Shown: positions 43,665-51,795, numbered from the whole stretch's first letter. The stretch: 63,752 nucleotides of DNA, filler included, from Hyphochytrium catenoides (GCA_900088475.1; 11 parts of 11 records of this genome joined end to end with filler, not necessarily neighbours in it); one strand, 5' to 3'. Notes: generated from the letters alone by a model not told the origin. A program made the numbers and translations.

Positions 43665-45802
43665 ATGAAGACTGGTACCCGATCCTCTCTTCTCTCTTTC
43701 TCCCCTTTTCATCTGCGTTCTCTCTCTCTTCGAAGCTTTTCATCTGCTGGTAGTAGGAGGTTGATTCCTCGGCCTCCTCTCTCTCTCATCGTCGGGCCCC
43801 AGCACTTCCAATGGCGAAGCCGCATAGACCCTGAGAAGAGAGAAAGAAGGGGAGAAGAGAAAGAAAGAAGAGAAGAGGAAGAAGGTGTGCTGTCCATTCC
43901 TCGTTCTTCCCTCTTCCATGTCCTGTCTCTCTCTCAGAGGTTGAGTGCTGCCTCTTCTTCTTCTCGCCCGCTCTTTCTGTCTGCCCTTTCCTCTATCTCC
44001 TATCCTCTTTCTTTCTTCCTCTTCTTGGTTCCGCGTCACATGTTTCTCTCCTAAAACTTGGTCTAGCTTGGGTCTCTCTCTTTCTCTCTCTCCCTCTTGA
44101 CATAAAAGAGAACTCTTCTCACTCCCCAGTCATATACTCCTTTTGCTTTTTCTCTCTGTTGTTGGCAACTCAGTAAGTGACTGTGTCTCGTTCCTTTTTT
44201 CTCTCTCTGTCTCTATGTCTTCCTCTCCCTGTCTTCCTTTCTCTCTCTCTCTCTCTCTCCCTCTCGCCGTCTCTCGCTCGATATCGCTTTCTGTCTGTCT
44301 CCTCTCGCTGACTCTCTCTCTCTCCTTACTGTCTGATTCTGTTGTTAACCCTTCTGTCTGTCTGTCTCTCTTGAGCAGATTGCCTTCCTCTTCCGTCTGC
44401 TCAGCTCCAAGCGGCATTATCCTCAGGAGCCATAGACATTCTGCAGCTCAGACTATCCTCTAGCGCTCTACCCTCTCTCTCTCTCCCTTCTCTCTCTCTC
44501 TCTCCCTTCCCCAAGTCCCTCTCTCCGTCAAGCTCGATGTTGGGCCTGATACAGACAGAGAGAGAGAGAGACGCGCTTGTTCTTATGGGACTGGCAGTCC
44601 AGAACTTTCTCTCTTCCTCTGCCTTTAAAGAGAGAGAAGAAGGTTCAAGAGAGATGAAGCGAGGAGATGAAGAGAGAGAGAAGAGACGGCGGCGTCCTCT
44701 CCTTCTTGTTAACAATTCAGTGGAAGCAGCTGTCAGGCTCGGTGCGGCAGGAGTCCATCTGCCAGAGAGGACATGGAAAGGTGAGAGCGGAGAGANNNNN
44801 NNNNNNNNNNNNNNNNNNNNNNNNNNNNNNNNNNNNNNNNNNNNNAGAGAGAGAGAGAGAGAGAGAGAAAGAGAGAGAAAGAGAGATGGGTGTAATGCAG
44901 AAGGAAGAAAGTGTTATTCAAATTGATGATAGAGCGAGAGCGAGAGAATGGGACAGTAAGGGAGAGAGAGAGAGAGAGACAGTAAGGGAGAGAAAGATAT
45001 GGGAAAGCAAAAGTTGTGCTGTCCCAGCTTTTTAACGGCTCAATGATGGCTAGAGCTGACGCTCTTTCTTCTTTTAACCTTGATCCCTTCTCCTCTTCAT
45101 TTGCTCGCCTCCTTCCTTCCTTTTCTCTCTTACCTTTGCCCTCTCTCTCTCTCTCTCTCTCTCTCTCTGTCTCTCTCTCTCTCTCTCTCTCTCGTTTTTA
45201 CTACTTTCTTACGCTTCGCCCACCTGCGCGAAGTGGCACCAGATGCAGTGCTTCGAAAGGTGAGGGAAGGCCTCACGAATAGTAGAAGGAAGAGGGAGAG
45301 AGACGGAGAGAGAGAAGATAAGGATCTTGTGTTGGTTGGATGCGCCGTGCACTCTCTCTCCGACGCTCTAGCAGCTGCTGCGGCTGGGGCGGACTACCTT
45401 CAGGTTGGAACGATGTTTCCCTCTCTCTCTCATCCAGAAAAGCTCAATGTTGAGGGGCCAGCGCTTCTCTCTTCCATTCAAGAGTCTCTCCCGGCTCTCT
45501 CTCATTCTCCTTCTTTAAAAGAAAGAGTTGGCCTGGGAGAGACATCTCTCTCTTTTCCTCTCTCTCCTTTTCTCCTGGCGGTTGGTGGGATCACCCACCT
45601 GAATATAAACACGGTCTTGGGGGCAGGCGCGGACGGAGTGGCGGTAATCTCTGAGATTTTAGAGAGCGAAGCTCCAAGCCAGGCGGCGCTTAGTCTGAGA
45701 AAAAAGCTGGACGGAGAGAGCATGAGCCCCGAATGCATGGAGGAAAAGGAGAAGATATGTGGAGGGAGAGAGAGAGAGAGAAAGAGAGACAAAGCTGCTT
45801 GA
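43665..45802 (+). CDS. Divergent thiamine-phosphate synthase superfamily protein (ThiE/TenI-like, TMP-TENI fold) with putative mitochondrial presequence
   Basis: Exons 43665-43884, 44379-44780 and ~45234/45243-45802. Motifs IDILQLR, LLVNNSVEAAVRLGAAGVHLPER, GCAVHS..ALAAAAAGADYLQVGTMFPSLSHP, LAVGGI and GADGVAVISEI. Confidence 0.85.
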
Positions 45803-46592
45803 GTCTACTGCTTGCTCTTGGGTCATTCTCCATATCACATTATCTTTCCTTTCGTAACAAGAGTGACAGAGGCGGATCAGTGCTACCTACCTTCTATGCC
45901 GCCTTCCGCCTCTCTCTCTCTCTCTCTGTCTCTCTCTTTCTCTCTTTCTCTCTCTCTCTCTCTCTCTTGCTGTGCTTAAAGAGAGGGAGGACGCCCGAAG
46001 AAAGCCGTGCTCTCTTCTCCCTACCTCTCTCCCTGGTGCCTAATAGTGGCCCCAGAAAGAGGGCCGGGTGTCTCTTGTGCTGCCACGCACGCCTGCTTCT
46101 CCTCTCTCTCCTCCTCATACTGGCCTCTTCTAGGTATTTCACGGGCAATAGGCACAGACTCGATTTTGATGCCCTTGGAAGAGACGGCATTCTGTCCTCC
46201 TGGTATCTCTCTCTCTCTCCCGTCCCTGTCTCTTCTGACACATTAGGCCATTATGAAAAACTTTCGAGTTGCATACTTATTGGGAGACCGCTGCAGGGAG
46301 AGAGAGACCCAGAGGATGATGAAGAGAGAGTCTGAGAGATGACAGAAAGCGGTTCATGGTGCGCTAAGAGTGGGAGAAGATTCTCATGCATTACTTAGGG
46401 TTATCCTAAGAGACGTATATAGAGTGTGCAGCTAGCGTGCACAGCCTGCAGGAGAGAGAAGATCCTTCTTCCTCTCTCTTTCCTTATCTCTTCCATGTCT
46501 TCATACCTTGAAAGACAGAACTCTTGCCTTCCTTTGCTCATAGTAAGAGATGAACAGAGACCCATCAGTGTCTCTCTCTCTCTTTCTGTCAC

Positions 46593-50044: not shown

Positions 50045-51795
50045 ATGGTCTTCCCTCGCTGCCGCGCGGTGGCGCTGGGCGTGTATCCGATCGTCCCTTC
50101 TGCCGAGTGGGTCCAGACGCTTCGCCCAGTCCGTCTTCAGATCCTGCAGCTAAGAATCAAGGATGAAAGCAAGGGTCTGGTGCCTAAAGAAAGGCTCTCT
50201 TCCAGGTATCTGCACGGGTCTCTCCCCTCTCAGTGTGTTTCTCCTGTCTCTAGGGGTCTCTCTCTCTCTCTGTCTCTCTCTCGTTTTCGACAGGTTTTAA
50301 CCGTTGTTCCACCGCCTTGACGACCTCTATCTTTCTTCTCTGAATTCTTCGTCGTGTCACCGTTGATATCTGTTTTCTCCCCTGATTTCTCTCTCTCTCT
50401 CCCTCTCTCTCTCTTTCTCTCCCCCTCCCCACTTCTCTCTCTCTCTCTTCTCTCCTTTCATGCGTACTCACTGTCTTCCCTTTAATAGTTCGGGAGAGAG
50501 AGAAAAGAGAGAGTGGGTACGTTCTGAGGTCAGGAAAGCTGTAGCTCTGTCTCGGGAGAGCAAAGGGCTAATGCTGTTCATAAATGATTATTGGGAGATC
50601 GCCATAGAAGAAGGAGCATACGGCGTGCACCTCGGTAGGAGATAAAGCGAAGACTGTTTTTGTTGAAAGCCAAGGACGCCGGAGAGAAAGAGAGAGAGAG
50701 AGAGAGAGAGAGAGAGAGAGAGAGAGAGAGAGAGAGGGATTGAGCACTCCTTGGAAGATAATAAGTAAAGCCTAAGAAGAGGTGAAGAGATGCATTTCGG
50801 TGGGAAGACGCTACTAAAGAAGAAGAGCTAGCGGCGTCGGATGAAGAGAATCGTGCACAGAGGGGTAGAGGAACCATGAAGATGAAAGGAGAGAGAGACA
50901 AAGACAGAGCGAGAGAGGACACATAAGTAAGCAGACTTAGAAGACAGAGAAGGAGAGAGAGAGACTGAGGTGAGAGAGAGACTGAGGGAGAGAGAGAGAC
51001 TGAGGGAGAGAGAGAGACTGGGGGAGAAAGAGAGACTGGGGGAGAAAGAGAGACTGAGGGCGAGAGAGAGACTGAGGGAGAAAGAGAGACTGGCACACAA
51101 TACAATGAAAGACAGAGACAAAGGCAAAGTTGTGGGAGAGAAAACCTCCAGGGTGCATAGTCAAGAGTTGGGAGAAGAAGAGGGAGATGGAGCTAAGTGA
51201 AGGCTACTTGCAGGGCAAGAAGACCTTGATACCGCGGACTTAGAGGCCATCAAGAGAGCAGGACTTCGTCTGGGTTAAGTGCTCTTTTCTGTTCATCTCT
51301 CTCTTCTCTGACCTCTTTGTCCCTTCTCCTTCCCATTCCTCTCTCTTCCCCTTCTTTACCCTCTTTGCTGTATGGACTCTCTCCTTATTGCTTCGTTTTG
51401 CTTCTCCCGCTCTTTGGCTCAGTAGCTTCACTACCTCTCCCTCTCTCTCTTCAGGTACAAGCACTCATACGCTAGAAGAGCTCGATCGGATTGTCTCTCT
51501 GGGTCCCTCATACATCGCTGTCGGACCAATGTTTGACTCTCAGACCAAACCCGAGACTGTTGCTCGCTATGGAGAACAAGGAGAGAGTGCAATCAAGCTC
51601 TGGAGGGAGAGACTGAAGGAGAGAGACATAGACTGTCCTCTTGTCGCCATCGGCGGCATCACCGCTCAGAATGCTCCTGGTCTGGTCGCTGCAGGAGCTG
51701 ACGGATTAGCAGTGATCAACGCCATTGTAAAGAGCGAAGACCCTCTGACCCAAATCAAAGCCTTTCAAAGCTTGTATGCAAAGGGAGAGAACTAA
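50045..51795 (+). CDS. thiE: Stand-alone thiamine-phosphate synthase, E. coli/proteobacterial type, 4 exons
   Basis: Exons 50045-50205, 50489-50634, 51214-51273 and 51455-51795. Peptides [80 protein letters not shown] and PLVAIGGI. Catalytic motifs are intact. Confidence 0.95.
50960..51091. repeat. ~18-bp minisatellite (gagactg[a/g]gggagaragaga) in thiE intron 2
   Basis: About seven imperfect tandem copies are visible. Confidence 0.8.

Follow-up and report, generated by a model that had tools for sequence, protein, structure and literature searches.

Genes of eukaryotic vitamin pathways are normally scattered, and the thiamine-phosphate synthase ThiE is normally fused to a kinase. In Micromonas and Ostreococcus, which belong to the green lineage, the thiamine genes SSSF, TH1 and THIM are co-located and one gene has a thiamine pyrophosphate (TPP) riboswitch (McRose et al. 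2014, PMC4260697). A principle of alternative splicing has been described for eukaryotic TPP riboswitches (PMC3597705). A eukaryotic TPP riboswitch in an intron of the 5' untranslated region (5'UTR) and the co-location of eukaryotic thiamine genes, e.g. in Micromonas (PMC4260697), are both kinds of arrangement already known. Here we describe three thiamine genes at positions 43665-51795 of a stretch of Hyphochytrium catenoides DNA (GCA_900088475.1) of 63,752 nucleotides, filler included; this whole stretch is called the window below. The genes occupy 8.1 kb and are represented by G1 (plus strand, three exons), a TenI-like gene, by THI4 (minus strand, six exons), the thiazole synthase gene with a TPP aptamer, and by G3 (plus strand, four exons), a ThiE gene. 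This is an unusual arrangement among eukaryotes, with THI4 and its riboswitch placed between a ThiE that is stand-alone, intron-bearing and of bacterial type on one side and a TenI-like paralogue on the other. The lineage is close to the oomycetes, many of which need external thiamine.

The exon models of the three genes were built manually from three-frame translations. All three models are in frame, and the introns are of the GT-AG type apart from one GC-AG intron in THI4. The first-pass annotation of this DNA had reported three consecutive intron-containing genes of thiamine families in about 8 kb; the Pfam matches of the individual exons and the in-frame models bear this out at the same coordinates. 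The locus is probably a nuclear neighbourhood in which three thiamine genes are transcribed separately; the riboswitch would control THI4 through the splicing of a 5'UTR intron, G3 would be an active ThiE and G1 a TenI-like protein. The trio is a metabolic gene neighbourhood and not an operon.

As in the fungal NMT1 and THI4 genes and in the THI4 gene of Chlamydomonas, the aptamer is located in an intron (here a predicted one) upstream of the open reading frame (ORF) of a thiazole or pyrimidine synthase. The aptamer is likewise near the 3' splice site, and faulty removal of the intron would leave upstream AUGs exposed. The locus differs from these systems by its stramenopile-affiliated lineage, and by the fact that no second 5' splice site and no element complementary to P4/P5 was detected. 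With Micromonas and Ostreococcus it shares the co-location of nuclear thiamine genes, one of them with a TPP riboswitch, whereas the genes themselves are different: a transporter, a fused ThiD-ThiE and ThiM in the green lineage, and here THI4 with a stand-alone ThiE and a TenI-like gene. A thiazole synthase, ThiE and a TenI-type paralogue are also clustered with a TPP riboswitch in the bacterial thi operons (thiO-thiS-thiG-thiE-thiD in the contig L006, thiG-TenI-like-thiS in L089). Contrary to these operons, the locus is made up of genes that have introns, alternate in strand and are each monocistronic; the riboswitch serves a single one of the three, and the thiazole synthase is the eukaryotic THI4 rather than ThiG/ThiS.

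The thiazole synthase THI4

The coding region of THI4 (46593-48101, minus strand; manual model and Pfam Thi4) encodes 352 amino acids in the exons 48101-47911, 47799-47655, 47582-47444, 47369-47067, 46975-46833 and 46730-46593. Four of its introns are GT-AG and one is GC-AG; the latter is intron 2 (47654-47583, minus strand), with the boundaries CAG/GCAAGA...TATCAG. The family Thi4 (PF01946) is detected on exons 2 to 5 with E-values from 6e-13 to 3e-38, covering the profile positions 1-231 of 235. The best PDB match of exon 4 is the Arabidopsis THI1 (1rp0; 5e-39), and the motif TQSCMDPN, which contains the active-site cysteine, aligns with the same motif of this protein. The insertion of the yeast and Neurospora proteins is absent from exon 4. 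We take the cysteine of TQSCMDPN to be the sulphur donor of a suicide-type THI4. Judging from these residues, THI4 appears to be a plant-like, cysteine-dependent, single-turnover thiazole synthase. Its N-terminal extension resembles a targeting peptide. An exact look-up of a THI4 ORF, in search of an independent assembly, gave no match.

A scan of metagenome contigs with exon 4 recovered 80 THI4 loci. In the two closest, L009 (76% identity over 318 residues) and L010 (70%), the ORF is uninterrupted, and the THI4 model aligns with both of these intron-free environmental sequences without indels at all five exon junctions, which validates the splice model, GC-AG intron included. Both ORFs are preceded by a TPP aptamer (70.2 bits in L009, 62.8 bits in L010), that of L009 being close to identical with the aptamer of the window, P1 included. 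The pairing of riboswitch and THI4 is therefore conserved in this THI4 clade. A further homologue, L012 (66% identity), has two tandem TPP aptamers (66.1 and 57.3 bits; 1165-1385) downstream of the ORF, i.e. in a 3'UTR arrangement, whereas in the window, L009 and L010 the aptamer is 5' of the ORF.

The TPP riboswitch and the predicted 5'UTR intron

The aptamer of THI4 (THI element with a short P3; 48354-48449, minus strand) matches the Rfam family RF00059 over the full model (positions 1-105) with 74.8 bits, compared to a gathering score of 54.3, and an E-value of 1.7e-13. It is located 253 nt upstream of the THI4 ATG, on the same strand, so that the assignment of a TPP riboswitch to THI4 in the first-pass annotation is upheld. 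All the consensus ligand-binding blocks are present in the cmscan alignment: GGGGUGC, CUGAGA, ACCC, GAACCUGA, GCG and AGGGA. The minimum free energy fold of the isolated aptamer is the canonical three-way fold composed of P1, P2/P3 and P4/P5; its energy is not better than that of shuffled sequences (z -0.55). This aptamer is the sole significant Rfam RNA in the 16.6-kb scaffold piece analysed (43300-59922), where no second aptamer was found at E<=1. All other Rfam matches, those to microRNAs and to Hsp83 included, fell under the gathering score on GA/CT repeats; the microRNA and Hsp83 matches were rejected as artefacts, and a scan for bacterial promoters and terminators was uninformative for eukaryotic DNA.

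The THI4 ATG (48101) and the G3 ATG (50045) are head to head at a distance of 1.94 kb, with the aptamer (48449-48354) in between on the THI4 strand, as had been noted before. The riboswitch acts in cis on THI4 only and cannot act on G1 or G3.

From the splice-site consensus, a 5'UTR intron of 241 nt is predicted at 48327-48567 (minus strand; AAG/GTAAAC ... polypyrimidine-CAG/G), followed by a predicted last 5'UTR exon at 48102-48326 (minus strand). This exon contains a five-codon upstream ORF, MDPLC (ATG at 48245). The predicted donor at 48567 is the sole strong donor in 48090-48900. The predicted acceptor at 48327 is preceded by a polypyrimidine tract and is the closest acceptor of this kind to the THI4 ORF, the aptamer being 26 nt upstream of this 3' splice site. 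Four upstream AUGs (48482, 48460, 48423 and 48386) are included in the predicted intron. The 5' leader of THI4 comprises at least 470 nt (from the predicted donor 48567 to the ATG 48101).

The stand-alone ThiE, G3

G3 (50045-51795, plus strand) encodes 235 amino acids in four exons (50045-50205, 50489-50634, 51214-51273 and 51455-51795) separated by GT-AG introns. The family TMP-TENI (PF02581) is detected on exon 2 (3e-6) and on exon 4 (3.7e-19). Exons 1, 2 and 4 match ThiE-type models best in Pfam and NCBIfam, models of the E. coli or proteobacterial type being at the top for exons 1 and 2, and exon 4 matches the B. subtilis ThiE (8e-15). The best score of a single exon is 73 bits, for an NCBIfam equivalog cut-off of 145 (ThiE, TIGR00693). 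All residues that are invariant in 113 ThiE homologues are retained, i.e. Gln35, Arg37, Lys39, Asn86, Asp87, His101, Gly103, Asp106, Ser125 and Lys154, which form the pattern QxRxK, ND, HxGxxD, GxS and K.

Residues 3-230 of G3 align with bacterial ThiE domains at 40-45% identity. The word-indexed search reached 46% identity at best, and the exhaustive one 55% (over exon 4); no relative of G1 or G3 above 55% was found in two word-indexed searches and one exhaustive search. Many of the top matches are ThiD-ThiE fusions, the named ones coming from Acidobacteria, an Alteromonadales bacterium and the ochrophyte Chrysoparadoxa, and two further relatives are located in bacterial thi operons of the thiO-S-G-E-D type. 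In a quick tree, G3 is a long branch weakly joined to an Acidobacteria fusion protein, outside the Chrysoparadoxa clade. No donor of G3 is claimed from this tree.

No kinase domain is coded upstream or downstream of G3. The possibility of a TH1 fusion with a hidden ThiD was rejected, the six-frame translation of 49011-50060 showing no ThiD. The first-pass annotation, which had named this gene thiE and set it against the fused plant TH1 and fungal THI6, is borne out: G3 is a stand-alone ThiE. The coupling chemistry expected of G3 from its residues is the same as that of TH1 (ThiD-ThiE) and THI6 (ThiE-ThiM); unlike these proteins, G3 stands alone, and it is not grouped in the quick tree with the TH1 of Chrysoparadoxa, the one named TH1 from a stramenopile. 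On this basis G3 appears to be a bacterial-type ThiE resident in the genome, with three spliceosomal introns. The mixed origin proposed for the locus agrees with a plant-like THI4, whose exon 4 is best matched by the Arabidopsis THI1, beside a bacterial-type G3. Intron 2 of G3 contains an 18-bp unit (GGAGAGAGAGAGACTGAG) repeated 7.9 times with 91% identity (50952-51092).

The TenI-like paralogue, G1

G1 is predicted to encode 396 amino acids in three exons (plus strand) with GT-AG introns. Exon 1 (43665-43884) comprises an N-terminal extension and the first beta-strand motif PPLSLIVGP, which lines up with RPxLxFVTP of G1-like proteins of the red-algal type. Its 3' boundary is approximate because the coding sequence is there of low complexity. 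Exon 2 (44379-44780), joined to exon 1 in phase 1 via a GT..AG intron, contains the motif ILQLR and the segment LLVNNS...GVHLPERT (Pfam TMP-TENI, 8e-4). Exon 3 (45234-45802, with the stop codon) contains the motifs GCAVHS, QVGTMFPSLSHPEK, GGIT and GADGVAVIS (Pfam TMP-TENI, 4.1e-15).

The identity between G1 and G3 is only 29%, therefore G1 is not a recent duplicate. With reference to the 113 homologues, G1 differs at six ThiE-invariant columns: Lys to Ser100, Asp to Asn186, Gly to Pro202, Asp to Thr205, Ser to Ala245 and Lys to His274. In the B. subtilis ThiE, the residues that bind Mg2+, the lysines that bind pyrophosphate and the catalytic serine are found among these columns. Having lost these six residues, G1 cannot be a ThiE catalyst. 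The phosphate-binding motifs GGIT and GADGVAVIS are intact.

As the B. subtilis TenI (1YAD/3QH2), G1 belongs to the TMP-TENI fold, is devoid of the Mg2+/pyrophosphate residues of ThiE and keeps the phosphate-binding loops. A segment starting with HLP resembles what we take to be the corresponding QLP segment of B. subtilis TenI. Unlike TenI, exon 3 scores 56.3 bits with the NCBIfam model TenI (NF005819) for a cut-off of 251, and 54.0 bits with thiE, far under the cut-off too. PDB searches with G1 bring it no closer to TenI than to ThiE, ThiE being placed above TenI. G1 sits beside THI4, in whose pathway no tautomerase step is known.

The changes Ser to Ala (GCAVHS) and Lys to His (TMF..SHPxK) are common to intron-poor proteins of 225-268 amino acids of the red-algal type. 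This group contains one named Gracilaria sequence (L005), the others (L002-L004) being Logan contigs, red-algal by appearance. The change Lys to His (SHPGK) is also found in two bacterial proteins, P0243 and P0244. The gene of P0243 sits between thiG and thiS, a TenI-type context, while the neighbour of G1 itself is THI4 and not ThiG/ThiS. The G1-like proteins, with the signatures GCAVHS and SHPGK, look like an uncharacterised eukaryotic TenI-like family. In view of its residues and of the gene context in which its relatives are found, G1 may be described as TenI-like, and not as a TenI orthologue. The first-pass annotation had called this gene ThiE/TenI-like; its place in the TMP-TENI family and the TenI side of this name are kept, and a second ThiE is discarded by the six lost residues. 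In the three Logan contigs (L002-L004), the G1-like gene is near a fused ECH-3HCDH-thiolase gene.

Physical linkage of the three genes

Three assembly gaps are localized in the trio. Gap 1 (44796-44845) is included in the G1 intron 44781-45233, with the same (GA)n array on either side. The adjoining exons stay in frame, and the protein is continuous compared to its homologues, no segment being lost at the join: the codon begun at the end of exon 2 (phase 1) is completed by two bases of exon 3, and the resulting ...HLPERTWK-V-APDAVLRKV... matches the homologues. Gap 2 (48973-49010) is intergenic, with (AG)n on its left (48893-48972) and unique sequence on its right. Gap 3 (49455-49516) is also intergenic and has (TC)n/(CT)n on either side (49413-49454 and 49517-49793). 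Between gaps 2 and 3 there is an island of 444 bp (49011-49454), mostly without GA/CT repeats apart from a TC array (49411-49454). The island was devoid of coding signal, and neither an ORF (ThiD-like or other) nor a tRNA nor a match to Rfam was found in it. Its position and orientation are the scaffolder's choice; it may represent a small contig that was inserted during scaffolding, or else part of a mobile element.

Gaps 2 and 3 being intergenic between the THI4 leader and G3, the linkage of these two genes rests on scaffolding. On the other hand, the run 45234-48972 is free of gaps and contains exon 3 of G1, THI4 and the riboswitch. The dependence on scaffolding at three gaps, as formerly stated, is thus restricted to the THI4-G3 adjacency and to the 5' part of G1. 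If the genome is assumed to have about 12,000 genes, two of them of the TMP-TENI family, we estimate the chance that two such genes flank THI4 to be of the order of 1e-8, which is very unlikely.

Only 365 bp of the scaffold precede G1, and the cluster could therefore extend beyond its left end. The first-pass annotation had read the lack of a pyrimidine-branch gene as fitting the scavenging of hydroxymethylpyrimidine (HMP); this is not supported, as absence from a 16.6-kb scaffold that ends 365 bp before G1 says nothing in this respect.

Interpretation of the locus

In the explanation that we hold to be probable, THI4 would make the adenylated thiazole and the aptamer would exert feedback control on it by altering the splicing of its 5'UTR intron, by analogy with the fungal and algal TPP riboswitches (PMC3597705). 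Removal of the intron would permit the translation of the main ORF of THI4, and binding of TPP would lead to intron retention or alternative splicing, the upstream AUGs borne by the aptamer then blocking translation. G3 would be an active thiamine-phosphate synthase of the bacterial type that gained its three spliceosomal introns secondarily, and would join thiazole phosphate to HMP pyrophosphate. G1 would be an old paralogue in which the phosphate-binding loops of the barrel have been kept and the Mg2+/pyrophosphate and catalytic residues lost; it most likely binds a ligand of the thiazole-phosphate type as TenI does, with a thiazole tautomerase or accessory role.

Several observations weigh against this explanation. 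A pairing between the 5' splice site and the 3' strand of P1 occurs in the minimum free energy and centroid folds, yet at the background level of GA/CT-rich DNA: it ranks 299th among 3244 sequence windows, and 26% of them equal or beat its P1 part. No complement of P4/P5 better than in shuffled sequences was found upstream when GU sites were searched. No significant expression platform was found for the aptamer, and no claim is made here from the predicted pairing. The predicted 5'UTR intron, the transcription starts and the boundaries of G1 exons 1 and 2 follow from consensus. The aptamer of L010 (29-119) ends at the THI4 start codon and is without internal AUG, which suggests a translational or other platform in the same THI4 clade. 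Concerning G1, TenI and ThiE are not told apart by the hidden Markov model or PDB scores, either for G1 or for its group; TenI has, to our knowledge, no role in a THI4-based pathway; and the protein is rich in low-complexity insertions coded by microsatellites, so that the gene could be decaying. Finally, the flanks of the 80 environmental THI4 loci (570 kb altogether, with 29 loci reaching 8 kb or more), mostly from distant organisms, contain no G1-like or G3-like sequence, and no thiamine neighbours are present at the four G1-like loci of red-algal appearance (L002-L005).

As an alternative, the riboswitch could act in the mature 5'UTR, interfering with scanning or initiation rather than with splicing; the L010 aptamer fits this mode, and McRose et al. 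(PMC4260697) note that the mode of action of certain algal riboswitches may be undocumented or resemble translational control. We consider such action quite unlikely for the window, where the aptamer is 253 nt from the ATG, four upstream AUGs lie in or flank it, and a good donor and a polypyrimidine-AG acceptor bracket it. The first-pass annotation had preferred an operon-like, co-regulated module, possibly with a bidirectional promoter; THI4 and G3 would then share this promoter, and all three genes would respond together to thiamine. The tight adjacency of three genes of the same pathway, far beyond chance, speaks for such a module, as do the divergent orientation of THI4 and G3 and the SSSF-TH1-THIM co-location with a riboswitch-bearing gene in Micromonas and Ostreococcus (PMC4260697). 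It is nevertheless unlikely, given that the only aptamer in the 16.6 kb acts on the THI4 transcript alone, that the two starts are 1.94 kb apart with two gaps of indefinite size and the 444-bp island between them, that the THI4 leader by itself takes up at least 470 nt, and that the neighbourhood is missing at the 80 THI4 and four G1-like loci. The THI4-G3 adjacency could also be an artefact of scaffolding, contigs that are not neighbours having been joined by paired-end links via (GA)n/(CT)n microsatellites; the only true linkage would then be that of G1 exon 3 with THI4. In favour of this, two gaps and an island of different composition lie between riboswitch and G3, and no independent assembly of the species was found, the contig L001 belonging to another one (82% DNA identity). 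We give very little credence to such an artefact: a single (CT)n array is present on both sides of gap 3, as expected of an unassembled microsatellite; the composition, the repeat type and the intron style are uniform along the scaffold; and a chance mis-join that puts the ThiE of the genome beside THI4 is itself very unlikely.

G1 could also be a decaying or non-functional duplicate of the ThiE family, in which case the only meaningful unit would be THI4 with ThiE. Besides the six lost residues, the microsatellite-coded insertions (SLSLSL and RERERE tracts) and the weak family similarity of exon 2 point in this direction. Against it, the frame is open over 396 codons in three exons with consistent splice phases, the motifs GGIT and GADGVAVIS are intact, and the changes are not random, the replacements Ser to Ala and Lys to His being shared with intact red-algal-type proteins and the latter with a bacterial protein encoded beside thiG and thiS; decay of G1 seems to us rather doubtful. 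At the other extreme, the three genes may lie side by side for a selective reason, as a functionally integrated module of three ancestries: THI4 would be eukaryotic, ThiE would have come from bacteria by horizontal transfer, and the TenI-like protein, of the red-algal or bacterial type, would have been recruited to the THI4 route, all being thiamine-responsive together. G1 might then process the adenylated thiazole or the carboxythiazole phosphate, or channel it to ThiE, and a missing step in the handling of thiazole by eukaryotes would be revealed; we regard this as improbable and speculative.

The locus adds a lineage that is neither fungal nor green to the list of THI4 riboswitches, and it offers a small natural test case for the formation of metabolic neighbourhoods in protists. 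It raises a concrete question, that of the role of a TenI-like protein beside THI4. If co-regulation of the genes or a function of G1 in the THI4 route were true, the locus would be of real interest for the thiamine and riboswitch fields; at present it is a well-documented curiosity.

Host lineage and neighbouring genes

The trio is placed in eukaryotic nuclear DNA by its spliceosomal introns and its uniform (GA)n-rich composition. The G+C content is about 50% across 43300-59922, where the composition is evenly eukaryotic and 27 tandem-repeat rows, chiefly (GA)n/(CT)n, were recorded. These arrays occupy most introns and intergenic DNA, and inside G1 they even code for SL and RE repeats.

Downstream of G3 are found a cyclin gene (minus strand), a Sec61 alpha gene (minus strand) and an hnRNP-Q-like gene (plus strand), none of them related to thiamine. 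The Sec61 alpha protein displays 83% identity to oomycete proteins and 78-80% to ochrophyte proteins. In a quick single-gene tree it forms a clade with the oomycetes (Shimodaira-Hasegawa-like approximate likelihood ratio test, SH-aLRT, 99), apart from the diatoms and Nannochloropsis. From this single-gene placement, the host would be a stramenopile-affiliated eukaryote.

Sec61 alpha and the hnRNP-Q-like gene (55554-58786) are also adjacent on the Logan contig L001 (run ERR505057). The Sec61 of L001 is 99% identical as a protein; its DNA is only 82% identical, and L001 therefore comes from a related species and is not an independent assembly of this one. A fourth gap (57367-57398) is located between Sec61 and the hnRNP-Q-like gene, outside the trio, in a long (AG)n array (57559-57898 nearby).

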